Below, one piece after another: positions 25,180 through 58,612 of a stretch of 64,000 nt of DNA. The stretch's first letter is position 1, and every line of letters begins with the position of its first letter. Source of the stretch: Ranitomeya imitator (lineage: Eukaryota). Under the pieces are notes generated by a model. The model saw nothing but the letters and a program-made list of their open reading frames with translations. It did no database searches and was not told the origin of the DNA. The translations under genes and the position numbers were made by a program. Location of the stretch: NCBI RefSeq assembly GCF_032444005.1, contig NC_091288.1, positions 221,278,001 through 221,342,000 on the forward strand. Direction: 5' to 3'.

Positions 25180-25541
25180 CTACGATTTGTAATGGCGGAC
25201 GTGGCGCTGATTGCCGTTATCGGCTAGTCCTGTTTGTCGCCTCAGTTCCTCGATCTCCCTGTCCAGCACCATGTGGTGCATGTACTTGATCAGGAACTTT
25301 TTGCGCTCGGCTCTTTCTCTTACAACGTGGTGCCGCTCTGACATCCGGAAGGTGACGTCCTGCAGAGCATGGTATAGGAACGTCAGGATAGCGGAGTCCT
25401 TGCCGAGGGTCCGCAGGTGGTCTTTCTTGGTGTAGTTTTCTACCAGCACTACCTGCTCCGCACCTGCCAGTCGGAATCGTCTTTCTATCTCCTCTGCACA
25501 CGGATTGTTCTTGTGAGTAATGATAATTATGGGGGAGATAC
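25180..25541 (-). CDS. P-loop gene terminal exon (ISPIIIITHKNNP...VENYTKKDH...ERAERKKFLIKYMHH...HYKS*)
   Basis: cttcttgtcttctcgcag| acceptor; 362 nt; TAG at 25182-25180. Confidence 0.88.
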
Positions 25542-28500
25542 CTGCGAGAAGACAAGAAGTGACCCGGTATATGTCAGGAATCCCACCGCGCAGCCACCAA
25601 TATGTCATGGTTAATGGGGAAGATATCTTTATCATCACCACTCACACCAAGTGTGTTGGGGGCAGAGCAAAGTACTGCAGTGCACAGGTGCCGGGCCTCT
25701 CTGACCTTTACAGGCGCCTGCGCACTGCAGTACTTTGCTCTGCCCTCAACAGGGTAGACAAAGTGCGCCGACGCCGCAACGTGAATGCAAGAAGAGGACG
25801 TCTTCGTAAGAAGATGGGAGGCCCCGGACCGCGACGCCCATTGGACCTGGACCACAGCAGGACCGCCCCTGGGTGAGTATAATCTAACCTCTTTTTCTCA
25901 CCTATCGGGATACATCGGGGCTTATCTACAGCATTACAGAATGCTGTAGATAAGCCCCTGATGCTGGTGGGCTTAGCTCATCTTCGATTTTGGGGGTGAC
26001 AGGTGTTATGTGTGCTAATGAAAGGTGTTATGAAGGCAATCCAGAGACACAGTGTGCCTAGCGATCAGAGCGCACACAGTGATCTGACAAATACCCAAAA
26101 ACAAAAGAACGAGCTCTGAGACGTGGAAACTCTGTAGACTGCACACCTGATCCTATCCTAAACACAACTAAAAGCGGCTGTGGATTGCGCCTAGCAACTA
26201 CCTATGCAACTCGGCACAGCCTAAGAAACTAGCTAGCCTGAAGATAGAAAAATAGGCCTGACTTGCCCCAGAGAAATACCCCAAAGGAAAAGGCAGCGCC
26301 CCACATATAATGACTGTGAGTAAGATGAAAAGACAAAACGTAGGGATGAAATAGATTCAGCAAAGTGGGGCCCGATATTCTTAGACAGAGTGAGGACAGT
26401 AAAGCGAACTTTGCAGTCTACAAAAAACCCTAAAGCAAAAACCACGCAAAGGGGGCAAAAAAGACCCACCGTGCCGAACTAACGGCACGGCGGTACACCC
26501 TTTGCGTCTCAGAGCTTCCAGCGAAACAAAAGACAAGCTGGACAGAAAAAAAGCAACAAAATAGCAAAAAAGCACTTAGCTATACAGAGCAGCAGGTCAC
26601 AGGAACAATCAGGAGAAGCTCAGATCCAACACTGGAACATTGACAAGGAGCAAGGATAGCAGCATCAGGTGGAGTTAAGTAACGAAGCAGCTAACGAGCT
26701 CACCAGAACACCTGAGGGAGGAAGCTCAGAAGCTGCAGTACCACTTGTGACCACAGGAGTGAATTCAGCCACAGAATTCACAACAGTACCCCCCCCTTGA
26801 GGAGGGGTCACCGAACCCTCACCAGAGCCCCCAGGCCGACCAGGATGAGCCGCATGAAAGGCACGAACAAGATCGGGAGCATGAACATCAGAGGCAAAAA
26901 CCCAGGAATTATCTTCCTGAGCATAACCCTTCCATTTAACCAGATACTGGAGTTTCCGTCTAGAAACACGAGAATCCAAAATCTTCTCCACAATATACTC
27001 CAATTCCCCCTCCACCAAAACCGGGGCAGGAGGCTCAACAGAAGGAACCATAGGTGCCACGTATCTCCGCAACAACGACCTATGGAATACATTATGTATG
27101 GAAAAGGAGTCTGGGAGGGTCAGACGAAAAGACACAGGATTGAGAACCTCAGAAATCCTATACGGACCAATAAAACGAGGTTTAAATTTAGGAGAGGAAA
27201 CCTTCATAGGAATATGACGAGAAGATAACCAAACCAGATCCCCAACACGAAGTCGGGGACCCACACGGCGTCTGCGATTAGCGAAAAGTTGAGCCTTCTC
27301 CTGGGACAAGGTCAAATTGTCTACTACCTGAGTCCAGATCTGCTGCAACCTGTCCACCACAGAATCCACACCAGGACAGTCCGAAGACTCAACCTGTCCT
27401 GAAGAGAAACGAGGATGGAACCCAGAATTGCAAAAAAATGGAGAAACCAAGGTAGCCGAGCTGGCCCGATTATTAAGGGCGAACTCAGCCAACGGCAAAA
27501 AGGACACCCAATCATCCTGGTCTGCAGAAACAAAACATCTCAGATATGTTTCCAAGGTCTGATTGGTTCGTTCGGTCTGGCCATTAGTCTGAGGATGGAA
27601 AGCCGAGGAAAAGGATAGGTCAATGCCCATCCTACCACAAAAGGCTCGCCAAAACCTTGAAACAAACTGGGAACCTCTGTCAGAAACAATATTCTCAGGA
27701 ATGCCATGCAACCGAACCACATGCTGAAAGAACAAAGGTACCAAATCAGAGGAGGAAGGCAATTTAGCCAAGGGCACCAGATGGACCATTTTAGAAAAGC
27801 GATCACAGACCACCCAAATGACTGACATCTTTTGAGAAACGGGAAGGTCAGAAATGAAATCCATCGAAATATGTGTCCAAGGCCTCTTTGGGACCGGCAA
27901 GGGCAAAAGCAACCCACTGGCACGAGAACAGCAGGGCTTAGCCCTAGCACAAATCCCACAGGACTGCACAAAAGTACGTACATCCCGTGACAGAGATGGC
28001 CACCAGAAGGATCTAGCCACTAACTCTCTGGTACCAAAGATTCCAGGATGACCAGCCAACACCGAACAATGAAGTTCAGAGATAAGTTTATTAGTCCACC
28101 TATCGGGGACGAACAGTTTCTCCGCTGGACAACGATCAGGTTTATTCGCCTGAAATTTTTGCAGCACCCGCCGCAAATCAGGGGAGATGGCAGACACAAT
28201 GACTCCTTCCTTGAGGATACCCGCTGGCTCAGATAAACCCGGAGAGTCGGGCACAAAACTCCTAGACAGAGCATCCGCCTTCACATTTTTAGAACCCGGA
28301 AGGTACGAAATCACAAAGTCGAAGCGGGCAAAAAATAACGACCAACGGGCCTGTCTAGGATTCAAGCGCTTGGCAGACTCGAGATAAGTCAAGTTCTTAT
28401 GATCAGTCAATACCACCACGCGATGCTTAGCTCCTTCAAGCCAATGACGCCACTCCTCGAATGCCCACTTCATGGCCAGCAACTCTCGGTTGCCCACATC

Positions 28501-31500
28501 ATAATTACGCTCAGCGGGCGAAAACTTCCTGGAAAAGAAAGCACATGGTTTCATCACTGAGCAATCAGAACCTCTCTGTGACAAAACCGCCCCTGCTCCA
28601 ATCTCAGAAGCATCCACCTCGACCTGGAACGGAAGAGAAACATCTGGCTGACACAACACAGGGGCAGAACAAAAACAACGCTTCAACTCCTGAAAAGCTT
28701 CCACAGCAGCAGAAGACCAATTAACCAAATCAGCACCCTTCTTGGTCAAATCGGTCAATGGTTTGGCAATGCTAGAAAAATTACAGATGAAGCGACGATA
28801 AAAATTAGCAAAGCCCAGGAACTTTTGCAGACTTTTCAGAGATGTCGGCTGAATCCAATCCTGGATGGCTTGGACCTTAACTGGATCCATCTCGATAGTA
28901 GAAGGGGAAAAGATGAACCCCAAAAATGAAACTTTCTGCACACCGAAGAGACACTTTGATCCCTTCACAAACAAAGAATTAGCACGCAGGACCTGAAAAA
29001 CCATTCTGACCTGCTTCACATGAGACTCCCAATCATCTGAGAAGATCAAAATGTCATCCAAGTAAACAATCAGGAATTTATCCAGATACTCACGGAAGAT
29101 GTCATGCATAAAAGACTGAAACACAGATGGAGCATTGGCAAGTCCGAACGGCATCACTAGATACTCAAAATGACCCTCGGGCGTATTGAATGCAGTTTTC
29201 CATTCATCTCCTTGCCTGATTCTCACCAGATTATACGCACCACGAAGATCTATCTTAGTGAACCAACTAGCCCCCTTAATCCGAGCAAACAAGTCAGATA
29301 ACAATGGCAAGGGATACTGAAATTTAACAGTGATCTTATTAAGAAGGCGGTAATCAATACACGGTCTCAGCGAACCATCCTTCTTGGCTACAAAGAAGAA
29401 CCCTGCTCCCAGTGGTGATGACGATGGGCGAATATGTCCCTTCTCCAGGGATTCCTTCACATAACTGCGCATAGCGGCGTGTTCGGGCACGGATAAATTA
29501 AATAATCGACCTTTAGGGAATTTACTACCAGGAATCAAATTGATAGCACAATCACAATTCCTATGCGGAGGTAGGGCATCGGACTTGGGCTCTTCAAATA
29601 CATCCTGATAATCAGACAAGAACTCTGGGACCTCAGAAGGGGTGGATGACGAAATCGACAAAAATGGAACATCACCATGTACTCCCTGACAACCCCAGCT
29701 GGATACCGACATGGAATTCCAATCCAATACTGGATTATGGGTTTGTAGCCATGGCAACCCCAACACGACCACATCATGCAGATTATGTAGCACCAGAAAG
29801 CGAATAACTTCCTGATGTGCAGGAGCCATGCACATGGTCAGCTGGGCCCAGTATTGAGGTTTATTCTTGGCCAAAGGTGTAGCATCAATTCCTCTCAATG
29901 GAATAGGACACCGCAAAGGCTCCAAGAAAAACCCACAACGTTTAGCATAATCCAAATCCATCAGATTCAGGGCAGCGCCTGAATCCACAAACGCCATGAC
30001 AGAAAACGACGACAAAGAGCATATCAAGGTAATGGACAGAAGGAATTTGGACTGTACAGTACCAATGACGGCAGACCTAGCGGACCGCTTAGTGCGCTTA
30101 GGACAATCAGAAATAGCATGAGTGGAATCACCACAGTAGAAACACAGCCCATTCAGACGTCTGTATTCCTGCCGTTCAACTCTGGTCATAGTCCTATCGC
30201 ACTGCATAGGCTCAGGTTTAACCTCAGGCAATACCGCCAAATGGTGCACAGATTTACGCTCGCGCAAGCGTCGACCGATCTGAATGGCCAAAGACAAAGA
30301 CTCATTCAAACCAGCAGGCATAGGAAATCCCACCATGACATCCTTAAGAGCCTCAGAGAGACCCTTTCTGAACAAAGCTGCCAGCGCAGATTCATTCCAC
30401 TGAGTGAGTACTGACCATTTCCTAAATTTCTGACAATATACTTCTATATCATCCTGACCCTGGCACAAAGCCAGCAAATTTTTCTCAGCCTGATCCACTG
30501 AATTAGGCTCATCGTACAGTAATCCGAGCGCCAGGAAAAACGCATCGACACTACTCAATGCAGGGTCTCCTGGCGCAAGAGAAAACGCCCAGTCCTGTGG
30601 GTCGCCGCGCAAAAAAGAAATAATAATCAAAACCTGTTGAATAGGATTACCAGAAGAATGAGGTTTCAAGGCCAGAAATAGCTTACAATTATTTTTGAAA
30701 CTTAGAAACTTAGTTCTATCTCCAAAAAACAAATCAGGAATAGGAATTCTTGGTTCTAACATAGATTTCTGATCAATAGTATCTTGAATCTTTTGTACAT
30801 TTATAACGAGATTATCCATTGAAGAGCACAGACCCTGAATATCCATGTCCACACCTGTGTCCAGAATCACCCAAATGTCTAGGGGAAAAAAAAAAAGTGA
30901 ACACAGAGCAGAAAAAAAAAAGATGATGTCAGAACTTTTTCTTTCCCTCTATTGAGAATCATTAGTTTGGCTCCTTGTACTGTTATGTTTGCTAATGAAA
31001 GGTGTTATGAAGGCAATCCAGAGACACAGTGTGCCTAGCGATCAGAGCGCACACAGTGATCTGACAAATACCCAAAAACAAAAGAACGAGCTCTGAGACG
31101 TGGAAACTCTGTAGACTGCACACCTGATCCTATCCTAAACACAACTAAAAGCGGCTGTGGATTGCGCCTAACAACTACCTATGCAACTCGGCACAGCCTA
31201 AGAAACTAGCTAGCCTGAAGATAGAAAAATAGGCCTGACTTGCCCCAGAGAAATACCCCAAAGGAAAAGGCAGCCCCCCACATATAATGACTGTGAGTAA
31301 GATGAAAAGACAAAACGTAGGGATGAAATAGATTCAGCAAAGTGGGGCCCGATATTCTTAGACAGTGAGGACAGTAAAGCGAACTTTGCAGTCTACAAAA
31401 AACCCTAAAGCAAAAACCACGCAAAGGGGGCAAAAAAGACCCACCGTGCCGAACTAACGGCACGGCGGTACACCCTTTGCGTCTCAGAGCTTCCAGCGAA

Positions 31501-34500
31501 ACAAAAGACAAGCTGGACAGAAAAAAAGCAACAAAATAGCAAAAAAGCACTTAGCTATACAGAGCAGCAGGTCACAGGAACAATCAGGAGAAGCTCAGAT
31601 CCAACACTGGAACATTGACAAGGAGCAAGGATAGCAGCATCAGGTGGAGTTAAGTAACGAAGCAGCTAACGAGCTCACCAGAACACCTGAGGGAGGAAGC
31701 TCAGAAGCTGCAGTACCACTTGTGACCACAGGAGTGAATTCAGCCACAGAATTCACAACAGACAGGTTCCCTTTCACGGGTCCGGAGCCAACCCAAATCA
31801 GCGTAATTCACTTCAGAGGACGCGACAGTTCATTTATAGAGCAGGGAGAGACAAGCTGGTAAATTATATATTTTACTTAAAAAAAAGGTAGGTAGTATTA
31901 ACAAAGTATAAAAAGATATATAGGAGACAAAATCGTGTGTACATTACAATTACAAATAGAAGGATTACAATTGATTAGGTACTGCACCTAGGGTAATTAG
32001 TCGCCAGAAAGGCTGCCTTATTTTGTACTAGCTTAATGGGAACGCTGCAGCGAGGGCGATATAGCTACTCCCACTCAGGCGCGGAACAATAATTATCAAC
32101 TCCGCTGTCGCTACAAAGCCTACCAACGCACAGGACAAATTTGCTGCCACCAGCTCCGATTTCTTAATTATTAACGGGTCTGGAGCCAACCCAGATCAGT
32201 AGCGTAATTCACTTCAGAGGATGTGACTACGTTGTAGAGCATGAAGAGACAAAGCTAGTAATTTTATATATTTTACTCCAAAAAGGTAGGCAGTGTTTAC
32301 AAAGTATAAAAAGATATTATAAAGAAGACAAATATCATATGTACTGAACAATTATAAATAAAATGGGATTAAAGTTGAAAAGAACACTTACATTTCATTA
32401 TGTCATCTTATCTTATGGCCGACCGTGTGCTGTGGGGGAAGGACGAGCATATATCCAGATGCATCACCCCTTTATAGCAGCTAGGCCCCGGACAAAAGAC
32501 ATGTGAAGACTGATGTACCAATCAGTTATTTCCCAGCCCAAAACAAAGGCACACCCCCTGTGGTGACCTTACTCAGAGGCTGGATTCTCCCCTTTCTTAG
32601 CATTCTGAAAAACCATCATCCCACATCTGGCGTAGGAACCTCATAGAAAGATGACACCTGTGTCGTTATGCTCAGCATGCCATAGGGATTTGTTTAAGTA
32701 TAGACATGGGGAAGCTGGGTGAACCAGTTCCAAAGTGATCCGTTTCTCAATTGTGCTGGTTCTGGAACCGAGAAAACTCACTGGCTGATAGTTCTACTGA
32801 AGCCCATGTCAGAAATGTATTTGTTCCACTTCTATCATTAATCGCTGCTATGATGTTTACATTTGCAAGGACAAAGAAACCTGGGTTTTCTCCATGTGCT
32901 TCTACTTGTACTTTCACTTTGAAGCCATAAAAATTCCTCAGTGGAGTTGGCAGCTGGTCTCACATTACCACCATATAGCGGGGAGGGAGAGTGGCTTAGA
33001 ATTCCAGCCTTGTGTGGCAGGCAGACGAAACTGCAGCTGAGAGCTCTGTATGTGTAATGGAAGTAATAAGGACTCCTTCCTATTTCCTGACAATCGCCCA
33101 CTGACGTCATCAGTACCCAGCTGTCAGATACTGAGCTCGATACAGAGCGGTGGATGCGGGAGACATTGGCTGATTTCTCAGGACTGTGCTCATCTTCACA
33201 GGTAAGGTTTCTTTTAAAATCACCTGTTTACCAGATTATCCTTAAGAAGAATATGATAAAATGACCTCATGTGAGAGCAGGTGAGCTGTGACATCACCTA
33301 TTGTGAATGGTGGATCCTGTGTTATCTACTGTATATAGAGGTGTTATCAGTCATTGTACAGGAGGAGGTGAGCTGTGACATCACCTATTGTAAATGGTGG
33401 ATCCTGTGTTATCAGCTGTATATAGAGGTGTTATCAGTCATTGTACAGGAGGAGGAGGTGAGCTGTGACATCCCCTATTGTGAATGATGGATCCTGTGTT
33501 ATCTACTGTATATAGAGGTGTTATCAGTCATTGTACAGGAGGAGGAGGTGAGCTGTGACATCCCCTATTGTGAATGGTGGATCCTGTGTTATCTACTGTA
33601 TTTAGAGGTGTTATCAGTCATTGTACAGGAGGAGGAGGTGAGCTGTGACATCACCTATTGTGAATGATGGATCCTGTGTTATCTACTGTATATAGAGGTG
33701 TTATCAGTCATTGTACAGGAGGAGGTGAGCTGTGACATCACCTATTGTAAATGGTGGATCCTGTGTTATCAGCTGTATATAGAGGTGTTATCAGTCATTG
33801 TACAGGAGGAGGAGGTGAGCTGTGACATCACCTATTGTGAATGGTGGATCCTGTGTTATCTACTGTATATAGTGGTGTTATCAGTCATTGTACAGGAGGA
33901 GGTGAGCTGTGACATCACCTATTGTGAATGGAGGATCCTGTGTTAGCTACTGTATTTAGAGGTGTTATCAGTCATTGTACAGGAGGAGGAGGTGAGCTGT
34001 GACATCACCTATTGTGAATGATGGATCCTGTGTTATCTACTGTATATAGAGGTGTTATCAGTCATTGTACAGGAGGAGGAGGTGAGCTTTGACATCACCT
34101 ATTGTAAATGGTGGATCCTGTGTTATCTACTGTATATAGAGGTGTTATCAGTCATTGTACAGGAGGAGGGGGTGAGCTGTGACATCGCCTATTGTGAATG
34201 GTGGATCCTGTGTTATCAGCTGTATATAGAGGTGTTATCAGTCATTGTACAGGAGGAGGAGGTGAGCTGTGACATCCCCTATTGTGAATGGTGGATCCTG
34301 TGTTATCTACTGTATATAGTGGTGTTATCAGTCATTGTACAGGAGGAGGTGAGCTGTGACATCACCTATTGTGAATGGAGGATCCTGTGTTAGCTACTGT
34401 ATTTAGAGGTGTTATCAGTCATTGTACAGGAGGAGGAGGTGAGCTGTGACATCACCTATTGTGAATGATGGATCCTGTGTTATCTACTGTATATAGAGGT

Positions 34501-37500
34501 GTTATCAGTCATTGTACAGGAGGAGGAGGTGAGCTTTGACATCACCTATTGTAAATGGTGGATCCTGTGTTATCTACTGTATATAGAGGTGTTATCAGTC
34601 ATTGTACAGGAGGATGGGGTGAGCTGTGACATCGCCTATTGTGAATGGTGGATCCTGTGTTATCAGCTGTATATAGAGGTGTTATCAGTCATTGTACAGG
34701 AGGAGGTGAGCTGTGACATCACCTATTGTGAATGGTGGATCCTGTGTTATCTACTGTATTTAGAGATGATATTAGTCATTGTACAGGAGGAGGAGGTGAG
34801 CTGTGACATCACCTATTGTGAATGGTGGATCCTGTGTTATCTACTGTATATAGAGGTGTTATCAGTCATTGTACAGGAGGAGGTGAGCTGTGACATCATC
34901 TATTGTGAATGGTGGATCCTGTGTTATCTACTGTATATAGAGGTATTATCAGTCATTGTACAGGAGGAGGAGGTGAGCTGTGATATCACCTATTGTAAAT
35001 GGTGGATCCTGTGTTATCTACTGTATATAGAGGTGTTATCAGTCATTGTACAGGAGGAGCAGGTGAGCTGAGACATCACCTATTGTGAATGGTGGATCCT
35101 GTGTTATCTACTGTATATAGAGGTGTTATCAGTCATTGTACAGGAGGAGGAGGTGAGCTGTGACATCATCTATTGTGAATGGTGGATCCTGTGTTATCTA
35201 CTGTATATAGAGGTGTTATCAGTCATTGTACAGGAGGAGGAGGTGAGCTGTGACATCATCTATTGTGAATGGTGGATCCTGTGTTATCTACTGTATATAG
35301 AGGTGTTATCAGTCATTGTACAGGAGGAGGTGAGTTGTGATATCACCTATTGTAAATGGTGGATCCTGTGTTATCTACTGTATATAGAGGTGTTATCAGT
35401 CATTGTACAGGAGGAGCAGGTGAGCTGAGACATCACCTATTGTGAATGGTGGATCCTGTGTTATCTACTGTATATAGAGGTGTTATCAGTCATTGTACAG
35501 GAGGAGGAGGTGAGCTGTGACATCATCTATTGTGAATGGTGGATCCTGTGTTATCTACTGTATATAGAGGTGTTATCAGTCATTGTACAGGAGGAGGTGA
35601 GTTGTGACATCACCTATTGTAAATGGTGGATCCTGTGTTACCTACTGTATATAGAGGTGTTATCAGTCATTGTACAGAAGGAGGTGAGCTGTGACACCAC
35701 CTATTGTGAATGGTGGATCCTGTGTTATCTACTGTATATAGAGGTGTTATCAGTCATTGTACAGGAGGAGGAGGTGAGCTGTGACCAACTATTGTGAATG
35801 GTGGATCCTCTGTTATCTACTGTATATAGAGGTGTTATCAGTCATTGTACAGGAGGAGGAGGTGAGCTGTGACATCACCTATTGTGTATGGTGGATCCTG
35901 TGTTACCTACTGTATATAGAGGTGTTATCAGTCATTGTACAGGAGGAGGTGAGCTGTGACATCACCTATTGTGAATGGTGGATCCTGTGTTATCTGCTGT
36001 ATATAGAGGTGTTATCAGTCATTGTACAGGAGGAGGAGGTGAGCTTTGATATCACCTATTGTGAATGGTGGATCCTGTGTTATCTACTGTATATAGAGGT
36101 GTATCAGTCATTGTACAGGAGGAGGAGGTGAGCTGTGACATCACCTATTGTGAATGGTGGATCCTGTGTTATCTACTGTATATAGAGGTGTTCTCAGTCA
36201 TTGTACAGGAGGAGGAGGTGAGCTGTGACCAACTATTGTGAATGGTGGATCCTCTGTTATCTATTGTATATAGGTGTTAGTCATTGTACAGGAGGAGGAG
36301 GTGAGCCGTGACATCACCTATTGTGAATGGTGGATCCTGTGTTATCTACTGTATATAGAGGTGTTATCAGTCATTGTACAGGAGGAGGAGGTGAGCTGTG
36401 ACATCACCTATTGTGAATGGTGGATCCTGTGTTATCTGCTGTATATAGAGGTGTTATCAGTCATTGTACAGGAGGAGGAGGTGAGCTGTGACATCACCTA
36501 TTGTGTATGGTGGATCCTGTGTTATCTACTGTATATAGAGGTGTTATCAGTCATTGTACAGGAGGAGGAGGTGAGCTGTGACATCACCTATAGTGAATGG
36601 TGGATCCTGTGTTATCTACTGTATATAGAGGTGTTATCAGTCATTGTACAGGAGGAGGAGGTGAGCTGCGACATCACCTATTGTGAATGGTGGATCCTGT
36701 GTTATCTGCTGTATATAGATATGTTATCAGTCATTGTACAGGAGGAGGAGGTGAGCTGTGACATCACCTATTGTGAATGGTGGATCCTGTGTTATCTACT
36801 GTATATAGAGGTGTTATCAGTCATTGTACAGGAGGAGGAGGTGAGCTGTGACATCACCTATTGTGAATGGTGGATTCTTTGTTATCTGCTGTATATAGAG
36901 GTGTTATCAGTCATTGTACAGGAGGAGGAGGTGACCTGTGACATCACCTATTGTGAATGGTGGATCCTGTGTTATCTACTGTATATAGAGGTGTTATCAG
37001 TCATTATACAGGAGGAGGTGAGCTGTGACATCACCTATTGTGAATGGTGGATCCTGTGTTATCTACTGTATATAGAGGTGTATCAGTCATTGTACAGGAG
37101 GAGGAGGTGAGCTTTGATATCACCTATTGTGAATGGTGGATCCTGTGTTATCTACTGTATATCGAGGTGTATCAGTCATTGTACAGGAGGAGGAGGTGAG
37201 CTGTGACATCACCTATTGTGAATGGAGGATCCTGTGTTATCAGCTGTATATAGAGGTGTTATCAGTCATTGTACAGGAGGAGGAGGTGAGCTGTGACATC
37301 ACCTATTGTGAATGGTGGATCCTCTGTTATCTACTGTATATAGAGGTGTTATCAGTCATTGTACAGGAGGAGGAGGTGAGCTGTGACATCACCTATTGTG
37401 AATGGTGGATCCTGTGTTATCTACTGTATATAGAGGTGTTATCAGTCATTGTACAGGAGGAGGAGGTGAGCCGTGACATCACCTATTGTGAATGGTGGAT

Positions 37501-40500
37501 CCTGTGTTATCTGCTGTATATAGAGGTGTTATCAGTCATTGTACAGGAGGAGGAGGTGAGCTGTGACATCACCTATAGTGAATGGTGGATCCTGTGTTAT
37601 CTACTGTATATAGAGTTGTATCAGTCATTGTACAGGAGGAGGAGGTGAGCTGTGACATCACCTATTGTGAATGGTGGATCCTGTGTTATCTACTGTATAT
37701 AGAGTTGTATCAGTCATTGTACAGGAGGAGGAGGTGAGCTGTGACATCACCTATTGTGAATGGTGAATCCTGTGTTATCTGCTGTATATAGAGGTGTTAT
37801 CAGTCATTGTACAGGAGGAGGTGAGCTGTGACATCACCTATTGTGAATGGTGGATCCTGTGTTATCTGCTGTATATAGAGGTGTTATCAGTCATTGTACA
37901 GGAGGAGGTGAGCTGTGACATCACCTATTGTGAATGGTGGATCCTGTGTTATCTGCTGTATATAGTGGTGTTATCAGTCATTGTACAGGAGGAGGTGAGC
38001 TGTGACCAACTATTGTGAATGGTGGATCCTGTGTTATCTACTGTATATAGAGGTGTTATCAGTCATTGTACAGGAGGAGAAGGTGAGCTGTGACATCACC
38101 TATTGTGAATGGTGGATCCTGTGTTATCTACTGTATATAGAGATGTTATCAGTCATTGTACAGGAGGAGGAGGTGAGCTGTGACATCACCTATTGTGAAT
38201 GGTGGATCCTGTGTTATCTACTGTATATAGAGGTGTTATCAGTCATTGTACAGGAGGAGGAGGTGAGCTGTGACATCACCTATTGTGAATGGTGGATCCT
38301 GTGTTATCTACTGTATATAGAGGTGCTATCATTCATTGTACAGGAGGAGGAGGTGAGCTGTGACATCACCTATTGTGAATGGTGGATCCTGTGTTATCTG
38401 CTGTATATAGAGGTGCTATCAGTCATTGTACAGGAGGAGGAGGTGAGCTGTGATATCACCTATTGTGAATGGTGAATCCTGTGTTATCTGCTGTATATAG
38501 AGGTGTTATCAGTCATTGTACAGGAGGAGGTGAGCTGTGACATCACCTATTGTGAATGGTGGATCCTGTGTTATCTGCTGTATATGGAGGTGTTATCAGT
38601 CATTGTACAGGAGGAGGAGGTGAGCTGTGACATCACCTGTTGTGAATGGTGGATCCTGTGTTATCTGCTGTATATAGAGGTGTTATCAGTCATTGTACAG
38701 GAGGAGGAGGTGAGCTGCGACATCACCTATTGTGAATGGTGGATCCTGTGTTATCTGCTGTATATAGATATGTTATCAGTCATTGTACAGGAGGAGGAGG
38801 TGAGCTGTGACATCACCTATTGTGAATGGTGGATCCTGTGTTATCTACTGTATATAGAGGTGTTATCAGTCATTGTACAGGAGGAGGAGGTGAGCTGTGA
38901 CATCACCTATTGTGAATGGTGGATCCTGTGTTATCTGCTGTATATAGAGGTGTTATCAGTCATTGTACAGGAGGAGGAGGTGAGCTGTGACATCACCTAT
39001 TGTGTATGGTGGATCCTGTGTTATCTACTGTATATAGAGGTGTATCAGTCATTGTACAGGAGGAGGAGGTGAGCTGTGATATCACCTATTGTGAATGGTG
39101 AATCCTGTGTTATCTGCTGTATATAGAGGTGTTATCAGTCATTGTACAGGAGGAGGAGGTGAGCTGTGACATCACCTATTGTGTATGGTGGATCCTGTGT
39201 TATCTACTGTATATAGAGGTGTTATCAGTCATTGTACAGGAGGAGGAGGTGAGCTGTGATATCACCTATTGTGAATGGTGGATCCTGTGTAATCTGCTGT
39301 ATATAGAGGTGTTATCAGTCATTGTACAGGAGGAGGAGGTGAGCTGTGACATCACCTATTGTGAATGGTGCATCCTGTGTTATGAGCTGTATATAGAGGT
39401 GTTATCAGTCATTGTACAGGAGGAGGAGGAGAGCTGTGACATCACCTATTGTGAATGGTGGATCCTGTGTTATCTACTGTATATAGAGGTGTTATCAGTC
39501 ATTGTACAGGAGGAGGAGGTGAGCTGTGATATCACCTATTGTGAATGGTGGATCCTGTGTTATCTACTGTATATAGAGGTGTTATCAGTCATTGTACAGG
39601 AGGAGGTGAGCTGTGACATCACCTATTGTGAATGGTGGATCCTGTGGTAAAATTGACTGTTGTGATGGGGCTCCATGAATTCTATGTTCACAACTTGTAC
39701 AAGGGAGTGCCGGAGTGGGGAGATGAGCACAGACGGTTCTCCGTGGTCGTACCCCAGCAGGAGTAGCTGTTATTGTATCATTACCTCTTGCCTGTCACCT
39801 GATTGTATGATCCTACGTGTTGTAATCAATCCTTTTATTGCTTTTTCTGCTTTTGTGTTCTGCGGTAACTCACCGGTCATTGTTCTACAGCCTCGCAGGA
39901 AGGAACGTATCTCGGTGGCATCCTCCTCGATCTGTAATCCTCCACTGTAAATAACAATATAAAATTAACTAATAAATCTTACTGTGGGAAATTGGGTCTT
40001 GTCCCCAATAACTTGCTTTGCTGTCTACATTTGGATCTGTCAATGCAGCGTTAAGGTCATACAGAACTTGTGTGGAACGTGCGGCGTTTCTATGATGAGT
40101 TTTCATCCAGGAAAATTTTCAGTAAATTTTTCTATACAAACCTATGTGAGTTACTGGAGAAGTACTAAACAGAATGCAAGAACAACAGTAAAGACTGACA
40201 CGTGGGCATCCAAAACAGAGACCATTACGAGAGCCCCTCTAGCAGCGTGATGGTGCCCACCCTTCCCCAGGAGCGGAGATTTCCAGTGTAATGTCACAGG
40301 ATTTACCAGTGAACCATCACAGGAACGATGAGGTCTGTGGAATTAGGAGCCAAATCCGTCTCCTCCACTTTCTCTACCAGGTCTTCATATTCCCTGAGTT
40401 TTTCCACCATTTCATCCAGGGGGAGGAAGGATCCTGAGAAGGAAAGAATAAAAGACTGAGTCCACAGATCTCACAGTACCACCGTTGTAGTATCGATAGA

Positions 40501-42954: not shown

Positions 42955-42979
42955 TTTCTCAGACACTTTAATGAACAAG

Positions 42980-42991
42980 GAAAGTGAAAGT
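42980..42991. promoter_or_regulatory. IRF-element / ISRE-like motif GAAAGTGAAAGT
   Basis: Exact IRF1/2-type consensus 26 nt upstream of the P-loop gene ATG. Confidence 0.5.
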
Positions 42992-44509
42992 GTTCAGACT
43001 TCAGGGTGCGGCCTGCAAACATAAAGCGTGACGAATAATGAAGGACGCACCCTCTGCCTGCTGAACGGAAGACACCAGCTCGTCATCTGCTGACAACCAG
43101 CCTGTATACATGAGAGGTTGTCAAATGCCACCCGGTGATGACATCACTGATATAATTACATTGTGATATAAATAATGGGAGAAAACTACAAATCAGGAAA
43201 CTTTATTTTAATTTATGTATTTTTTATTTCCATTGTTCACAGACAAACTAGATCTAGCGATAGTGTAATAAACCAAAACCTCTAATAATGTATTCAACTT
43301 ATTACTGCTTCTTTCATGGATTTCGTGAAGCTCGCGATGACTTCGCCACGGGATTAAGTGAAGACGGCGGTTATAGATTCTAATTTATTTTTCTTTTTGT
43401 ACCCAACACCGATCCCTGCTGTATAATAGAATAGCCTCGTCACCTACAGAAGGATCCTTCCATGTGGCGGATTGACTGTTACATCACTGACTGCAGCACC
43501 TGTGTGCTCTGGGTTTTCATATGTGACGGGTCGTGGCGGTTTCCTAAGGTCATATTGGGCGGTGGTTAGAGATGAGCAAATCTGTACGATGTGAGTCACA
43601 ATTGCGTTTAATTTGGATTATCATAGCCTGTATAAAAGCAGAGGCAAGGAATGCAGCGGCAGTTTTGTGCCGAGTCGTGATCGCGAGAAGACATCAGTCA
43701 GAAGAAACAGATTGTGTGTGAGACCACAGTAGTGAAGATTAGTGTGTCAGGAAAGATAAGGAGAGCGCGGACAGCGGTGATTGTAGTGCACTTGCTACTT
43801 GTCAGTTACATTTTTTGATGGTTTATGCAGAAGTAATCCAGCAATATTGCTGAAGTAAAAAAAATCTATTAATGTAATTTAGAAACTGCTGAACAAAGTG
43901 TGCGCGTCACAAATGTCTGAAGCGTGCGCGTCACCTGCTCATATATTAGTCTATTTTGACGTACGTACGTGCCACACCAATACTGGTCATAAAGGAATTG
44001 CTTATTACCGCTTACCTAAAAAACAGCTTTTTACATTAACACCCCCTGTGTAACACTGGCACCGCACCTTCCTGGATCATTTTTACATTTTTATAAAGTT
44101 TCTAAACCCCTCTCGGGGCAGAGTTATTGTTGGTACGGGGTGCCGTCCATTTACCCAGAGTCACATATGTGGAGGTCACTTAGACGTGAAAGTGGTCAGA
44201 TGGGGGCGACGCACGTCTTTCCCGGGCACATGGAGGCCTTGCAGAATTTCACATTCCCGTTAAATCATTTTTTTTTTTTTGAAAAATGTGGCAAAGCCGG
44301 AGAATTCCGAAATCACAAGAGCCACTCGTCTAAATCGGAGATAGTGGACCATCGTTATAGATCGGTTTTATACAATGGCCGATATATGATATTTTAAAAT
44401 ATTTCCAATAAAAGATATATTCCAATTAGTGTTATTCAACCTCCTAGGCTTCGGTTTTGGGTACAGAGCCATCGTTTATCACTGGGTCCTTCCTTCGTAG
44501 ATATTTTCT

Positions 44510-44664: not shown

Positions 44665-47600
44665 CTGTATTTCGGGAACATAAGATTCTCTCGTTAGAAC
44701 AAAATTAATTATTATAAAAATGGTAAAAAAAAATATGAGAAATAGAATCAGGAAGGATTAGAGATCGGCGTGAAAAATACTCAGAGAAGAACGAGGCGAC
44801 ACCAGGATCCGGACTCGGGTCTCCATCAATATGCTCATGTATTACAGTAATAGACCAATCAGCAGGGGCCGAATCATTGACCAAAGTAATTAATAGTATA
44901 AGGCCAGTCTCACACGTCCAGATAATTCCGGTACCAGAATTATCCGTGTCCGTGTGCTCACGTGGCACATCAGTGTGCCGCCCGTGTGCCGACTAGGTAC
45001 CACACGCACCGTGCAGGAGACCGTGCTACAGTAAGCGTAAGATATGAAAAATCTTTTTTTTTTTTGGTGTTTAAAAAAAGATCCCTGTCCCCAACCCCCT
45101 CCCACCCCCTGTCCCCCCCCCCCCCCTGCTGTTAATAAAATACTTACCCGGCTCCCTCGCTCCTTCTTCTCGCCGCAGCTTCTCCTGTATGAGCGGTCAC
45201 GTGGTGCCGCCCATTACAGTGATGAATGTGCGGCTCCACCCCTATGGGATGGCGCCAGACAATAACCAAATATTACCATTATATACCATATAGTGATGAT
45301 ACTGATGACTGATCACAACCACTGTAGTGGGGCTGATATCTCCGCCATTCAGTGACCATATCATGGTAATAGTTCACATCAGTGCTCGGCTCATATACAT
45401 CCAGTGGTGCGCATTGATCCTAGTTAATCACTTTCCCTTTTCTTCTCCGTTCGGCCCAGACCGCCATGACCACTTCTCCCATCCATAACTCGGCCCTGCA
45501 AAATGTACCTCGGTTCCTGCTTTTCCCTGATACTGCCACCTGGGCCCTAGACAGTAATATTGCCCCTCGGTGACCTGCACAGTAATTGTACCCTCCTTTT
45601 GTGTCCCACACAATCATTATGTGATTAATTTGGGGACTGATTTATTTTGCCTCATTTAGAAGAACAAAAAGAAGTGAGAGGTCCGACTTACTCAGGGCCG
45701 GCTCCAGGATTACTCAGGCCCACAGCCCGTCTTTCTTTTTGATTTTTCCTCCTCACTGCAGTCATTGTATCAGAGATTTGTTTTTTTTTTGTGATACAAA
45801 TGTTTTCATCATCACCATTTTGATATCTTTATGATCTTTTTTTTACTCAATTTATTAGGAGGCAAAGTGTCCACAAAACGATTCATTTTGGCGTCCACTG
45901 TATGGGGTGGATATTATGATATTTTATTAGTTTGACCACTTACGGACTATAACAAATAAATGATATTGGTCCCCCTTGGGATTGTAATATTGCAGTGTAA
46001 TATAAAACTACCATCCTTCTGTGGCTCGGAGTCATAGGTGTACAAATATGGATGACAGTAGCCTTCACTAGACCCCTTTCCAGTGCCCGATACCTCAGAA
46101 TCGTCAGTCAGTCCGTCCTCTCCCACGGTCCCATCACTATCTCTTACCAAGCCTTGAGGACAGATATTGTAGCTCCTCGTCATACAGAGAGTCTGTGACA
46201 TCCGTGAGATTGACTCGTCCTCTGTTCTGGGTATGATACAGGATCCCAAAGTCACACCTCGACACGCTACTCGAGAACTCGGAGGACCCGTTGTTGGTGA
46301 TACAACAAGGCCGGACGCTCTTTACAAAGGACTCTGATGTCAGTCTTGTCTTCAACCATTCATATTCACTCTCTGCTGACCTCGAAAATATCCCCACTTT
46401 TACCTTGTGAAAATAAGAATATAAAAGCCATTGTAACTATAGAAAGTTAATCACTGCATAGAAAGTCAGTCACTGACTGCTTCTTATTGTCTTGACGTCT
46501 CTGAGTCTCTTTCTTAAAAATGTTAAAAATGTCATGGCACATTTTTTAACTGGTGTAAAGTGGACACTACAAGGATCTGTACTGGGAGCAGTGAAAACCA
46601 CCAGGATCTATACTGGGAACAGAGGAGACCACATTGATCTGTACTGAGAACAGAGGAGACCACATTGATCTGTACTGGCAGCAGAGGAGACCACATTGAT
46701 CTGTACTGGGAACTGAGGAGACCACATTGATCTGTACTGGGAACAGAGGAGACCACATTGATCTGTACTGGGAACAGAGGAGACCACATTGATCTGTACT
46801 GGGAACAGAGGAGACCACATTGATCTGTACTGGGAACAGAGGAGACCACATTGATCTGTACTGGGAACAGAGGAGACCACATTGATCTGTACTGGGAACA
46901 GAGGAGACCACATTGATCTGTACTGGGAACAGAGGAGACCACATTGATCTGTACTGGGAACAGAGGAGACCACATTGATCTGTACTGAGAACAGAGGAGA
47001 CCACATTGATCTGTACTGGGAGCAGAGGAGACCACATTGATCTGTACTGGGAACAGAGGAGACCACATTGATCTGTACTGGGAACAGAGGAGACCACATT
47101 GATCTGTACTGGGAGCAGAGGAAACCACATTGATCTGTACTGAGAGCAGAGGACACCACAAGAATCCTGACTGGGAACAGTGAGATCCACAATGATCTAT
47201 ACTGTGAGCAAATGGAACCACAAGGATCTCTATGGGATTTAGTTCTGAGCTCCACATTCTAAAACTTATATAGAATAGCTGGAGAAGGTTCAGGATTGGG
47301 CAACTAAGCCCCATGTACCAATGGGATGTGAGGTATCTCCTATAATGAACAGATTCTAACAAACTAAATTTGTCAAATTAAAAAAAATCAGCTCCTTCTC
47401 TCCCGTCTCCTCGCACCTGTCCATGCCGGTTCCTCCACCACCCGGTCTTCCTAAGTGCTCCCTTTGACCTTCTTTGATTACAAATACTTTCAGGTCTTCT
47501 GTCCTCTCAGACAGCCACCAGGCCTCATGGAGTTACATAGGGCGTAACTCGTCTGACATTAAGGACCTGCGTCATGTCTCACACAGTTGACTGCTTGGGA

Positions 47601-50600
47601 TTCCACTACTGCCATAAGAGAAAATGGGAAGGCCAAGGCGAGGAGGACCAGATGGGTGGGTCGGGTATCGGGAGGACCTATGTGAGCTCAGTACAAGGGT
47701 TTATTGTTCTCTAACCCTCATCTCCATCCTGTATCAAAGTTAAAAACCCCAAAGTTCCCATTTGAAAATAATGAACTTCTCCACTTACCTTATTGGGAGA
47801 TTTCCCTAAAAAATAGAACAAAAGAAGATTTTAATAAGTTTAATATTGAGCTGGAGGCAAAGTAAGAAAAGACAATTACTTTTCATCGTTTTTCGCATCT
47901 GACGCACTTTTTCTTCAAATGAAGAAGTTTTTCCGTAGCTAAATTCACCTACAAGAAATAGAAACAAAAAGATAAAGACGAAAGTGAGGACTATCGTGTA
48001 GAATGGAGGTGGATCAGTCTGGTACTGGGGGAGAATGCGGACAAGACACCGACAAGACATGAGACAATATACAGAGAAGACGAGGAGAAAACACGGACAG
48101 GACATGGACAAGATGCGGACAAGACACGGACAGAACATGGACAAGACACAGACAAGACACGGACTGGACACCGACAAGACATGAGACAATATACAGAGAA
48201 GACGAGGATAAAACACGGACAGGACATGGACAAGACACGGACAGGACATGGACAAGACACACAAGACACGGACTGGACACAGACAAGACATGAGAATATA
48301 CAGAGAAGACGAGGATAAAACAGACAGGACACGGACAAGACACGGATAAGACAAGGACAAGACACAGACAAGATGCGGACAAGATGCGGACAAGACACAG
48401 ATAAGACAAGGACAAGACACAGACAAGATGTGGACAAGATGCGGACAAGACACAGACAAGATGCAGACAAGACACGGACAGGACATGGACAAGACACGAA
48501 CAAGACAAGGACAAGACACAGACAGGACACAGACAAGATGCGGACAAGGCATGAGACATAACACTGACAACATACAAGTCGTCTCCTGTGGTCAGCAATG
48601 TAAGCAGCAATCAGTCCTGCTGTACAGGAGCTGGGGTGTGTGTAATTGTGTCTGTAGGATGATTTTCAGGTGCGTCTTTGGAATTGTGTATGAATGTGAT
48701 ATAATTGTGCATGTGTTCGTGTATCCAGATATTTTTGGCTACATACAGAACCAGTCAAAAGTCCTGACACCCCGGCTGCTGTAGTGGTTTTCCTTGCTCT
48801 TATTGGAATGTGCACACTGTAGATTCAGACTGAAGCAGCAAAACTAAGAAGGAAGCAAGAAGTAAGGAAACATATGGGGCACAAATAGAGTATGTGTTTA
48901 CATTCACTTGGAATAAATCACCAGAACTGGCACCATGAATGCACCCACCACACCATTACACCTCCCCTCCATTCTCCACGCACACATCCATCTCACCATC
49001 AATGCACCCTTCCATCTCATCATCAACATACCTGTCACATCATTACACCTCCCCTCCATGCTCCACATACCATTCCATCTCACCATCAACACACCTGACA
49101 CACCATTACACCTCCCCTCCATGCTCCACGCACCCCACCATCTCACCACCAACATACCCATCACACCATTACACCTCCCCTCCATGCTCCACGCACCCCA
49201 CCATCTCACCACCAACATACCCATCACACCATTACACCTCCCCTCCATGCTCCACGCACCCCACCATCTCACCACCAACATACCCATCACACCATTACAC
49301 CTCCCCTCCATGCTCCACGCACCCCACCATCTCACCACCAACATACCCATCACACCATTACACCTCCCCTCCATGCTCCACGCACCCCACCATCTCACCA
49401 CCAACATACCCATCACACCATTACACCTCCCCTCCATGCTCCACACACCCCTCCATCTTACCATCAACATACCCATCACACCATTACACCTCCCCTCCAT
49501 GCTCCACGCACCCCACCATCTCACCACCAACATACCCATCACACCATTACACCTCCCCTCCATGCTCCACACACCCCTCCATCTTACCATCAACATACCC
49601 ATTACACCTCCCCTCCATGCTCCACGCACCCCACCATCTCACCACCAACATACCCATCACACCATTACACCTCCCCTCCATGCTCCACGCACCCCACCAT
49701 CTCACCATCAACACACCCGCCACACCATTACACCTCCTCCATGCTCACACCCCTCCATCTTAACATCAACACACCCGCCACACCATTACACCTCCTCCAT
49801 GCTCACACCCCTCCATCTTAACATCAACACACCCGCCACACCATTACACCTCCTCCATGCTCACACCCCTCCATCTTAACATCAACACACCCGCCACACC
49901 ATTACACCTCCTCCATGCTCCACATACCACTCCATCTTAACATCAACACACCCGCCACACCATTACACCTCCCCTCCATGCTCCACACACCCCTCCATCT
50001 TACCATCAACCTACCCATCACACCATTACACCTCCCCTCCATGCTCCACACACCCCACCATTTCACCATCAACCTACCCATCACATCATTACACCTCCCC
50101 TCCATGCTCCACACACCCCACCATCTCACCATCAACCTACCCATCACACCATTACACCTCCACTCCATGCTCCACACACCCCTCCATCTTACCATCAACG
50201 CACCCGCCACACCATTACACCTCCCCTCCATGCTCCACACACCCCTCCATCTTACCATCAACGCACCCGCCACACCATTACACCTCCTCCATGCTCCACA
50301 TACCACTCCATCTTACCATCAACACACCCGTCACACCATTACACCTCCCCTCCATGCTCCATGCACCCTATCATCTCACCATCAATAAATCCGTTACATT
50401 ATTATTTATTTATATAGCACCATTGATTCCATGGTGCTGTACATGAGAAGGGGTTACATCAAAATACAGATATCACTTACAGTAAACTAACAATGACGGA
50501 CTGATACAGAGGGGCGAGGACCCTGCCCTTGTGGGCTTACATTCTACAGGATTATGGTGAAGGAGACAATAGGTTGAGGGTTGCAGGAGCACCGGTGTAG

Positions 50601-55483: not shown

Positions 55484-55640
55484 ATGTCGCATCGGTGTCT
55501 TAACAGCAGTGATAATTTCTGCTACACAGGCGGAGAATATACAATGAAAGCACAAAAGAAGGACATGACTCCACTTGTTAAGAAAGCTTATGAACTATAC
55601 TTTGTTCAACTGGAGATCAGGACAAACAGTGGGCACAATA
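55484..55640 (+). mobile_element. Chapaev3-like (CMC) DNA transposase N-terminal relic
   Basis: MSHRCLNSSDNFCYTGGEYT...MTPLVKKAYELYF then frameshifted GDQDKQWA, matching the remembered motif C.N..D.FCY.CGE...VKKAY.LYFG...GDQDK.WAPH. Confidence 0.6.
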
Positions 55641-55689
55641 ATCCTTTTTTTTGTTTGTTTCTCGTGTTTAACATAAAGATCCATGTCCC

Positions 55690-56303: not shown

Positions 56304-57590
56304 AGGGTTAGGGGTCAGACACTGACATAGGGGTTAGGGGTCAGACACGGACGTAGGGTTTGAGTTAGTGGTAAGACACTGACTTAGGGTTTGGTTAGTG
56401 GTTGGATGCTGACTTAGGGTTTGAGATAGTGGTAAGACACTGACTGAGGGTTTAGGTTAGTGGTCGGACACTGAGTTATGGTTTGGGTTAGTAGACAGAC
56501 ACTGACTTAGGGTTTGAGTTAGTGGACGGACACTGACTTAGGGCTTGATTAGTGTTCAGACACTGACTGAGGGTTTGGGTTAGTGGTCGAATACTGACTT
56601 AGGGTTTGGGTTAGTGGTCGAATGCTGACTTAGGGTTTGGGTTAGTGGTCGAATGCTGACTTAGGGTTTGGGTTAGTGGTTGGATACTAACTTAGAGTTT
56701 GGGTTAGTGGTCGGATACTGACTTAGGATTTGGGTTAGTGGTTGGATGCTGACTGAGGGTTTGTGTTAATGGTCGGACACTGACTTAGGGTTTGGGTTAG
56801 TGGTCGGATACTGACTGAGGGTTTGTGTTAATGGTCGGACACTGAGTTATGGTTTGGGATAGTGGTCGGACACTGACTTAGGGTTTGGGTTAGTGGTCGG
56901 ATACTGACTGAGGGTTTGTGTTAATGGTCGGACACTGAGTTATGGTTTGGGATAGTGGTCGGACACTGACTGAGGGTTTGGGTTAGTGGTCGAATGCTGA
57001 CTTAGGGTTTGGGTGAGTGGTCGGATACTGACTTAGGGTTTGGGTTACTGGTCAGATACTGACTTAGGGTTTGGGTTAGTGGTCGGATACTGACTGAGGG
57101 TTTGTGTTAATGGTCGGACACTGAGTTATGGTTTGGGATAGTGGTCGGACACTGACTGAGGGTTTGGGTTAGTGGTCGAATGCTGACTTAGGGCTTGGGT
57201 TAGTGGTCGGATACGGACTTAGGGTTTGGGTTACTGGTCAGATACTGACTTAGGGTTTGGGTTAGTGGTTGGATGCTGACTTAGGGTTTGGGTTAATGGT
57301 CGGACACTGATGTAGGGTTTGGTTAGTGGTCGGACACTGACTGAGGGTTTGGGTTAGTGGTCCGATACTGACTGAGGGTTTGGGTTAATGGTCGGACACT
57401 GAATTATGGTTTGGGTTAGTGGTCGGACACTGACTTAGGGTTTGGGTTAGTGGCCGGACACTGACGTAGGGCTTGGGTTAGTGGTAGGACACTGAGTTAT
57501 GGTTTGGGTTAGTGGTCAGACACTGACTGAGGGTTTGGGTTAGTCTTTGGACACTGGCATAGGGTTTGGGTTAGTGGTAGGACGCTGATT
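56302..57590. repeat. ~31-bp satellite containing telomere-like hexamers (CTGACTTAGGGTTTGGGTTAGTGGTCGGAYA)n
   Basis: TTAGGG-TTTGGG-TTAGTG in most units; starts with TTAGGGTTAGGG at 56302. Confidence 0.9.
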
Positions 57591-58559
57591 TATGATGCTA
57601 TGGCTCCTGGAAGAAGAGGGAAAATCTACAAAAGGGCAAGAACAAAAAGTGTCATCTGCGAGAAGGGAGAAAGGAAGAGGCTGAACTCGTCAATCACTGT
57701 AGCATCGGGTCTTCCCTGCACTGATCATAGAAGTCACTGTGTAACAATGTATCTGTGTTACTATGTAACAATGTATCTGTGTTACCATGTAACAATGTAT
57801 CTGTGTTACTATGTATCGGGATTAACTCTCTGCCTCCCAGTATTCTTGGAATGATTTTGCTCCCTTTCTATTGAGCTGTGGTGTCTTATAAGTGCCGATA
57901 TCTTTGTACATCAGTGCCCGTCGTCTGTCAGGTCAGCACGGCATCTTAGATGTTGATTGTACCTTTTAAAGGGGTTGTCCAGGATTACAAAGCCATGGTT
58001 AAATAGTTCAAGAAACAGCGCCCCCCTGACTACAGGTTGTGTGCGGTATTACAGCTAAGTGTCATTCATTTTCAGGGCGCTGATAAGAACAGACACCAGG
58101 GGTGTAAATACAATTGGTTCCGGGGTTGTAGTCGTACCCGGGCCCCGGAGACGCAGGGGCCCAATATAAAAAGACAATGCTATTAAGGACTTGCCCCATT
58201 GGGGACCATCAGCTTGAAGTGAGGCTGCTGCCAGACACAACCTGTGGACAAGTGGGGGCGCTGTGTCCGGAAGATACATGTTGTTCTAATACTATTTCCG
58301 CGTGTTTTCTCGTTGTGTCCGTTGTTTCTCCGTATTTGCACGGATGTTCGGCGCGCTCTCGTCGTCCGCTGTCCGCTATTATCACGAACCTGTCCGCTTT
58401 GGATCTCGCAGCGTTTCCTGACATCCTGACGTTTTCCTTCTGTCGTTGTCGCCTCCTGATTCCTGTGACCCCTTTAATTCTTCAGGATGTCGCTCCGTGT
58501 TTCGGGGCGCAGCGACCTCCTCTCCCTCCGATGAGATCAGATTGTGGCAGATTTGTAAT

Positions 58560-58612
58560 TTTTCACCTTTCTGGTTTCATTAGAAGACAAAGTGTCTTTC
58601 ACTTTCATTTCC
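58560..58612. promoter_or_regulatory. Clustered ISRE/IRF-like motifs (minus strand GGAAATGAAAGTGAAAG and GAAACCAGAAAGGTGAAA)
   Basis: Three GAAA repeats at 2-nt spacing, 58596-58612, in unique DNA upstream of the TIR-like gene. Confidence 0.45.

Follow-up and report, generated by a model that had tools for sequence, protein, structure and literature searches.

The genes analyzed here lie in a 64 kb stretch of the Ranitomeya imitator genome (contig NC_091288.1, positions 221,278,001 to 221,342,000), which is referred to as the window in its full length. On its minus strand two neighboring genes follow each other head to tail. Gene 1 encodes a short protein with a TIR-like domain, and gene 2 encodes a stand-alone G domain. 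Comparison across frog genomes shows that the pair is conserved as a linked unit, whose parts are adjacent in poison frogs and relatives and joined in a single reading frame in two other anurans, and an interferon regulatory factor element (IRF-E)-type motif is located at the 5′ end of each gene. We favor the interpretation that this is a conserved, probably IRF-regulated pair acting together, with the G domain assumed to serve the assembly or regulation of the TIR-like domain, and consider the case for it about evenly balanced.

Exon-by-exon rebuilding of both genes (Table 1) resulted in translations identical to the Ranitomeya imitator NCBI proteins XP_069591209.1 (gene 1, 222 aa; P0250/P0155) and XP_069591208.1 (gene 2, 291 aa; P0232). 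Both proteins are placed on CM064365.1 (GCA_032444005.1) at ~221.29-221.35 Mb. An isoform X2 of gene 1 (XP_069591210.1, 208 aa) is produced by skipping of exon 53103-53062. In a first-pass annotation of the window the genes had been called uncharacterised, which agrees with the NCBI label "uncharacterized protein" given to both; both are already annotated. Assembled RNA contigs were available from four runs of four studies, the runs carrying no treatment information. They cover the exons and omit the introns of both genes. In gene 1, a contig joint connects 44665 with 46150, and contig loose ends at 46406 continue into a micro-exon of only 17 nt (47805-47789), which is confirmed by the contigs. 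In gene 2, contigs stop at the donor 42638/9 and then enter exon 2; upstream they reach 42974, where the contig ends in adapter sequence, and 43044. As the RNA contigs are spliced at the rebuilt exon borders, both genes are transcribed. Together with the exact NCBI proteins, these contigs confirmed the arrangement of two minus-strand genes that had been described initially, with ~1.55 kb between the gene 1 stop codon (44510) and the gene 2 start codon (42954). The 3′ untranslated region (UTR) of gene 1 extends to ~43202-43226, beside AATAAA signals at 43228-43223 and 43207-43202, which leaves a spacer of only ~150-230 bp between the two transcripts.

Some further observations concern these transcripts. 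One RNA contig (run X10; 42638-43478) runs from the gene 1 3′UTR across the poly(A) signals into exon 1 of gene 2 and is spliced onward, which may be due to read-through transcription or to an assembly merge. The segment 44861-45259 in the last intron of gene 1 is a highly repeated, transcribed interspersed element: its contig depth in the RNA data sets sums to 956-5132, and many unrelated flanks adjoin it. At the start of exon 2 of gene 2 (40433-40404) all four RNA data sets show 3-4 mismatches to the window in 30 bases, so that the transcripts encode ...LDESVE... and the genome ...LDEMVE...; exon 1 itself is ~99.7% identical. This discrepancy could be allelic, reflect a difference between populations or stem from an unseen paralogue. 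A search with two RNA loose-end 30-mers gave no match; one of them crosses the junction of the 17-nt micro-exon, and the other differs from exon 2 at 3-4 of its 30 bases. An open reading frame (ORF) at 40673-40377 with the G3-like sequence IYLCDSTGFG was rejected as an exon of gene 2, being present neither in the RNA contigs nor in the exact model.

The head-to-tail order is common to five dendrobatoid species, R. imitator included. In R. variabilis, D. tinctorius, P. terribilis and Anomaloglossus, TIR-like exons directly precede the G-domain gene on its own strand, with gaps of 1.6, 3.7, 2.2 and 4 kb, respectively. Around the R. variabilis upstream paralogue at locus L001 no G-domain exon was present within 10 kb; the true neighbor is located in L002. 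On the other side of the pair, PPIL3 lies convergently downstream of gene 2 (window position 16190 or lower, plus strand), and this holds for Ranitomeya, Dendrobates and Phyllobates. When the 250 proteins retrieved were scanned with a gene 2 profile, two members of the TIR-like family were found to carry a gene 2-type domain in addition. Pseudophryne corroboree LOC134945689 (P0122, XP_063791201, 596 aa) matched with an hhalign probability of 97.3% and an E value of 2.7e-11, and the two proteins of Mixophyes fleayi LOC142097159 (P0252/P0087, with XP_075034878 among their accessions; 589 and 466 aa) matched with probabilities of 97.4% and 95.1%. E values for the three fusion proteins ranged from 2.7e-11 to 3e-8. 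The fusions display a 2+4 exon layout, the same as in the pair. At the Pseudophryne locus, 15 kb separate two TIR-like exons from four subsequent exons mirroring gene 2, and the frame is open through the junction. The single reading frame in Pseudophryne and Mixophyes argues for a functional partnership.

Pairwise Nei-Gojobori dN/dS values were 0.28-0.47 for gene 2 and 0.31-0.49 for the gene 1 domain. These pairwise values (0.28-0.49 overall) point to purifying selection on both genes, which are constrained yet fast-evolving. Such constrained but fast evolution is common in immune genes. In D. tinctorius, a 523-aa single-exon "gene" called between the two orthologues (L009 6709-8280) is a translated Pro-rich tandem repeat and probably an annotation artefact.

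The gene 1 product is predicted to be a short soluble protein in which a basic, disordered N-terminal part precedes a single TIR-like domain of 141 aa. The family of this domain comprises 362 cluster representatives, its named members are all from frogs, and many of its proteins contain more than one copy of the domain. An AlphaFold model of the domain shows five beta/alpha units (predicted local distance difference test score, pLDDT, 83.6), which corresponds to the five-stranded flavodoxin-like alpha/beta fold of bacterial CAP12/Pycsar-type TIRs (PF10137) and of plant RPS4. The top VIA wide match was the RPS4 TIR (PDB 4c6t; Z 9.2, root-mean-square deviation 3.5, 121 aligned), with TIR-STING (Z 8.0-8.2) and TIRAP (Z 8.0) among the other structural matches. 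In the ESM Atlas, CAP12/Pycsar TIR clusters were the commonest named neighbors, with template modelling (TM) scores of 0.61-0.65. Like these TIRs, the frog family has an invariant Glu where helix C starts, with an aromatic residue ahead of it (SLYDEEL as compared to S-x-W-C-x-x-E-L). This Glu, at the TIR catalytic position, was present in 40 of 40 aligned domains. It belongs to a conserved stretch with a pocket-forming loop (HTxNRGRxNxTDVTDSLYDEEL), and in the frog family the loop connecting strand 3 to helix C is longer than in the TIRs and strongly conserved. UniProt annotates some family members as TIR, and a collection of UniProt-annotated TIRs has been presented in a bioRxiv 2026 preprint by Hurieva et al. 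(10.64898/2026.04.20.719644). In Table S2 of this preprint, Glu is entered as the active-site residue of the Xenopus cluster A0A1L8EZ87, the aligned C-alpha distance being ~2, and Glu83 as that of A0A803JPW1, at 2.02 (10.64898/2026.04.20.719644). In our alignment Glu83 of A0A803JPW1 (P0145) shares a column with Glu163 of gene 1. We conclude that the gene 1 domain is TIR-like, with a Glu at the catalytic position and without a match to TIR families at the level of sequence; it may cleave NAD+ or merely serve as a scaffold.

Gene 1 has tandem paralogues ~41 kb or more upstream (loci L003 and L001). The encoded proteins P0156 (302 aa) and P0152 (315 aa) have the first exon of gene 1 and its motif-bearing promoter. 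They contain an inserted Cys-rich N-terminal stretch with CxxCNLDCC repeats, which is missing in gene 1.

The structure model of the gene 2 product (pLDDT 75.6) consists of a G domain from about residue 30 and a subsequent long C-terminal helix. A word-based search recovered seven close relatives only, from five dendrobatoids, one Logan transcript and Hyla sarda. The best fold match in the Atlas was a chordate cluster named "AIG1-type G domain" (TM 0.86), followed by several IFI44/IFI44-like clusters with TM 0.64-0.65 over ~235 residues, some of which carry TLD and MMR_HSR1. Foldseek neighbors in the PDB were IIGP1/IRG, Irgb6/10, GIMAP2 and septins, with E values of 1e-4 to 1e-3 and TM scores of 0.3-0.5. 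Language-model neighbors of the full-length protein were chordate G-domain clusters, and exon 1 alone retrieved an "Interferon-induced protein 44" cluster as top neighbor (0.92, 159 shared features). No TLD/TLDc domain was matched in the 291-aa protein by Pfam. Because it has no TLDc and no sequence-level match and because its best fold match is the AIG1-type cluster, the gene 2 product is regarded as resembling the IFI44 G domain in fold but not as an IFI44 family member. Of the initial description as an IFI44-like P-loop gene, the fold class therefore stood and the family assignment did not. Like IFI44 and IFI44L, gene 2 combines a P-loop G domain with an interferon-type promoter element; it differs from them in its small size and the lack of a TLDc domain and of an MMR_HSR1 match at threshold. 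It is also comparable to GIMAP/AIG1, IRG and septin GTPases, being a TRAFAC-class G domain with C-terminal helices, but its TM scores to these remain just at 0.3-0.5 and its G3 and G4 motifs deviate. The G3 motif (residues 89-92; 42688-42677) reads DNRG in Phyllobates, Anomaloglossus and Hyla. Both Ranitomeya species and Dendrobates have DNRP instead, and the Logan transcript has DNRC; the catalytic-loop glycine disappeared within Dendrobatidae. The G4 region THKNN resembles the GIMAP-type T-H-K-x-D; its Asp is absent, so that a complete G1-G5 set is lacking.

At the 5′ ends of both genes we found motifs of the interferon type. The IRF-E consensus is G(A)AAA(G/C)(T/C)GAAA(G/C)(T/C). An exact match to it close to the gene 2 start codon and a GAAA cluster upstream of gene 1, resembling an interferon-stimulated response element (ISRE), had been noted before, and both were verified (Table 1). 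The gene 2 element has an expected count of 0.01 in the window. The 11-mer GAAAGTGAAAG occurs twice in 64 kb as compared to 0 in 100 shuffles, in line with a frequency above shuffled background, and its two copies sit at the gene 5′ ends, one per gene and nowhere else in the window. For GAAANNGAAA, 4 copies were observed and 0.62 expected. R. variabilis, D. tinctorius and Anomaloglossus also have the gene 2 motif, at -35 to -40 relative to the ATG, and P. terribilis has it with a single change. The block containing the gene 1 cluster is also present upstream of the paralogues P0156 and P0152, and an exact 11-mer was found 7.4 kb upstream of the truncated model of the R. variabilis gene 1 orthologue. 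A GAAANNGAAA-type element is thus present above chance at the 5′ ends of the genes and is conserved. Since each gene has its own IRF-E/ISRE-type element, control of both by IRF/ISGF3 is predicted, and induction by interferon is likewise a prediction. The gene 2 leader also contains an upstream ORF (…MTSWCLPFSRQR…; 42994-43131, minus strand), and the D. tinctorius annotation places the translation start at the ATG equivalent to that of this ORF.

Table 1. Coordinates of the gene pair and its sequence elements in the window.
Feature	Position	Strand	Description
Gene 1 coding span	58424-44510	minus	TIR-like domain protein, 222 or 208 aa
Gene 1 exons	58424-58390, 53103-53062, 52678-52659, 51929-51855, 47948-47880, 47805-47789, 46403-46148, 44664-44510	minus	stop codon included
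Exons encoding the TIR-like domain	46403-46148 + 44664-44513	minus	141 aa; last two gene 1 exons
Invariant Glu codon	46175-46173	minus	Glu163 (222-aa form) = Glu149 (208-aa form); candidate catalytic residue
Gene 1 3′UTR	43200-44509	minus	continuous RNA contigs 44622->43226 and 43202
IRF-E/ISRE-like cluster GGAAATGAAAGTGAAAGA ... AATGAAACCAGAAAGGTGAAAAA	58612-58560	minus	gene 1 proximal promoter, 136-188 bp upstream of ATG 58424
Gene 2 coding span	42954-25180	minus	stand-alone G domain, 291 aa
Gene 2 exons	42954-42639, 40433-40307, 39944-39874, 25541-25180	minus	
Walker A/G1 motif GLIGSGKS	42840-42817	minus	gene 2 residues 39-46
Exact IRF-E consensus GAAAGTGAAAGT	42980-42991	plus	26-37 nt upstream of gene 2 ATG; gene strand reads ACTTTCACTTTC

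Several results weigh against a jointly acting, IRF-regulated pair, and they concern its linkage, its protein families and its promoter motifs. With regard to linkage, the synteny among dendrobatoids could be simple inheritance, and the Hyla sarda homologue has no TIR-like exon within 10 kb. The co-occurrence of both families, which was to be checked across anurans, was found in five dendrobatoids, as neighbors, and in two myobatrachoid frogs, as fusions, but not within 10 kb in Hyla. These findings fit the idea of independent neighbors, according to which a tandem TIR-like cluster came to lie beside a G-domain gene by chance. Both genes might then be interferon-stimulated without working jointly, the poison-frog linkage would be inherited synteny, and the fusion in Australian frogs would be a secondary exon shuffling event with a function of its own. 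The very large TIR-like family is promiscuous: other gene models join its domain to kinesin, P2RX7_C, Ig and GVIN/URGCP domains. Several upstream tandem paralogues possess the same promoter. We nevertheless regard this alternative as rather unlikely, because order, strand and exon layout recur in the distant Dendrobatoidea and Myobatrachoidea, because the frame is open across the junction in two genera, and because the gene 2 G-domain family was the sole recurring partner of such kind in the 250 proteins examined.

With regard to the proteins, none of 40 members of the TIR-like family matched a TIR profile at E values up to 10 (Pfam TIR, TIR_2 and CAP12-PCTIR_TIR; PADLOC ThsB/Cap12), and the family profile matched no TIR chain in the PDB. 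Matches of the domain sequence in Pfam, PADLOC and the PDB, for example to DUF659, KAP_NTPase and V-ATPase subunit H, were at chance level and were discarded. G domains, deoxyribosyltransferases and receiver domains tie with TIRs as structural matches of the gene 1 domain (Z 8-9), so that its scores overlap those of other flavodoxin-like folds. The gene 2 protein reached the threshold for no Pfam family, AIG1 (PF04548) and MMR_HSR1 included. Furthermore, the family member A0A803JPW1 from Xenopus tropicalis was expressed, with the "Active" column left blank at index 27 of Table S4, and yielded no cyclic ADP-ribose (cADPR) isomers and no NAD+ depletion in bacterial lysate assays (10.64898/2026.04.20.719644).

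The latter result bears directly on the strong form of the first-pass proposal, an interferon-induced pair of a NAD+-cleaving or signal-producing TIR-like enzyme and an active NTPase that senses infection or executes the response. The invariant Glu, the conserved pocket-forming loop, the Walker A motif intact in dendrobatoids and the IRF-E motifs at both genes are in agreement with such an enzymatic sensor/effector pair. The negative lysate assay speaks against it, as do the replacement of the G3 glycine by proline in Ranitomeya and Dendrobates and the absent G4 Asp. Moreover, the fused forms are devoid of the Walker A lysine (GFQKSDGSS and GSTESGRSS), and nothing identifies either protein as a sensor, the roles being pure inference. 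We consider this form of the proposal improbable.

With regard to the motifs, the Hyla sarda homologue has merely a one-mismatch motif at -67. Conservation extends over the entire 200-bp gene 2 leader (81% column identity), which leaves the motif indistinct from its flanks. RNA contigs reach 43044 and beyond, so that the gene 2 motif falls inside the 5′ leader or immediately behind it. In D. tinctorius the gene model begins further upstream, and the 83-nt intron that it splices out contains the IRF-E motif; the element may therefore sit in the 5′UTR or in a first intron, not upstream of the start. It is probably located downstream of at least one transcription start. In addition, both genes were found in 4/4 RNA data sets, whose runs, as stated above, carry no treatment information. 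That both are constitutive, housekeeping-like frog genes with GAAA motifs serving other factors in a constrained leader or promoter would suit their presence in all four data sets, the gene 2 motif being part of a uniformly conserved 200-bp block and probably of the 5′UTR, and a coding KVKV stretch that yields the same 11-mer by accident in L001, but is quite improbable in view of the exact IRF-E consensus match, which within 64 kb is seen solely at the two gene 5′ ends, and of the immune family context provided by the GVIN1 fusion and the IFI44/IRG/GIMAP-like folds.

The preferred interpretation, a conserved pair acting together, is best viewed next to systems in which a TIR domain is coupled to a nucleotide-binding module. 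TIR-NTPase coupling is central to plant and bacterial immunity; in vertebrates, TIRs are mostly familiar from receptor adaptors and from SARM1. As in plant TIR-NB-LRR proteins and in bacterial TIR-STAND/Avs and Thoeris systems, a TIR-type domain is coupled to a P-loop NTPase in frogs, by fusion or by operon-like adjacency. In contrast to these systems, the frog NTPase is a small TRAFAC G domain instead of a STAND ATPase, a repeat sensor domain is missing, and the system belongs to a vertebrate and is predicted to be transcriptionally induced. A further counterpart is the Bombina bombina model "interferon-induced very large GTPase 1" (GVIN1; XP_053550721/2), in which two copies of the same TIR-like domain precede a URGCP GTPase of the interferon-related URGCP/GVIN family. 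This fusion differs by its other GTPase family and is a single predicted gene model.

We propose that the two genes constitute a two-gene module of anuran innate-immune type. Both would be switched on by IRF/ISGF3 factors, gene 2 beginning ~200 bp past the poly(A) site of gene 1. Their products are the TIR-like protein and a septin/AIG1/IFI44-class G domain carrying a long C-terminal helix, and both most likely function within a single complex. The G-domain partner may be the platform on which the TIR-like domain assembles, either in a nucleotide-dependent manner or as a mere structural support; this role is proposed by analogy, because NTPase modules do so for TIRs in plant TIR-NB-LRR and bacterial TIR-STAND proteins. 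A bolder and distinctly unlikely extension would be an IRF-controlled immune system in a vertebrate, made up of a TIR and a GTPase component, in which the G domain nucleates oligomers of a catalytically competent TIR-like domain that consume NAD+ or make a nucleotide signal. It would be encoded by two genes in poison frogs and by one fused protein in myobatrachoids, and the assay of the lone domain would have been negative for want of its partner.

Apart from the gene pair, the window is rich in repeats. A full-length Ty3/gypsy long terminal repeat (LTR) retrotransposon (26004-31663) resides in the last intron of gene 2 on the strand of the gene. Its uninterrupted ORF (26665-30870, minus strand) encodes 1401 aa with the order gag, protease, reverse transcriptase, RNaseH, integrase and chromodomain. 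The two LTRs are 99-100% identical over the compared 300-nt stretches, indicating a very recent insertion. Minisatellite arrays with periods of 27-102 bp occupy 1-24694, 33275-39646, 40903-42596, 46574-47237, 48038-50385, 56331-57592 and 60759-63995. With arrays of up to 8.4 kb they make up about half of the window and cover most of the gene 2 introns and the PPIL3 side.

We found no literature on a pairing or fusion of the TIR-like family with the gene 2 G-domain family or on shared IRF-type elements, and searches on Xenopus IFI44, on TIR NADases of frogs and on LOC identifiers of Xenopus revealed nothing on the gene pair. As the TIR-like family itself has been catalogued before in the preprint, the novelty claimed at the outset is restricted to the pairing and fusion with the G-domain gene. 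One branch of a frog-wide TIR-like family is stably paired or fused with a small IFI44/AIG1-class G domain and accompanied by IRF-type elements, which makes it a candidate vertebrate TIR-plus-NTPase module. The pairing also suggests a reason for the lack of in vitro activity of a family member assayed on its own. Such a module would be relevant to antiviral and antifungal defence of amphibians, a field with few characterised effector genes.

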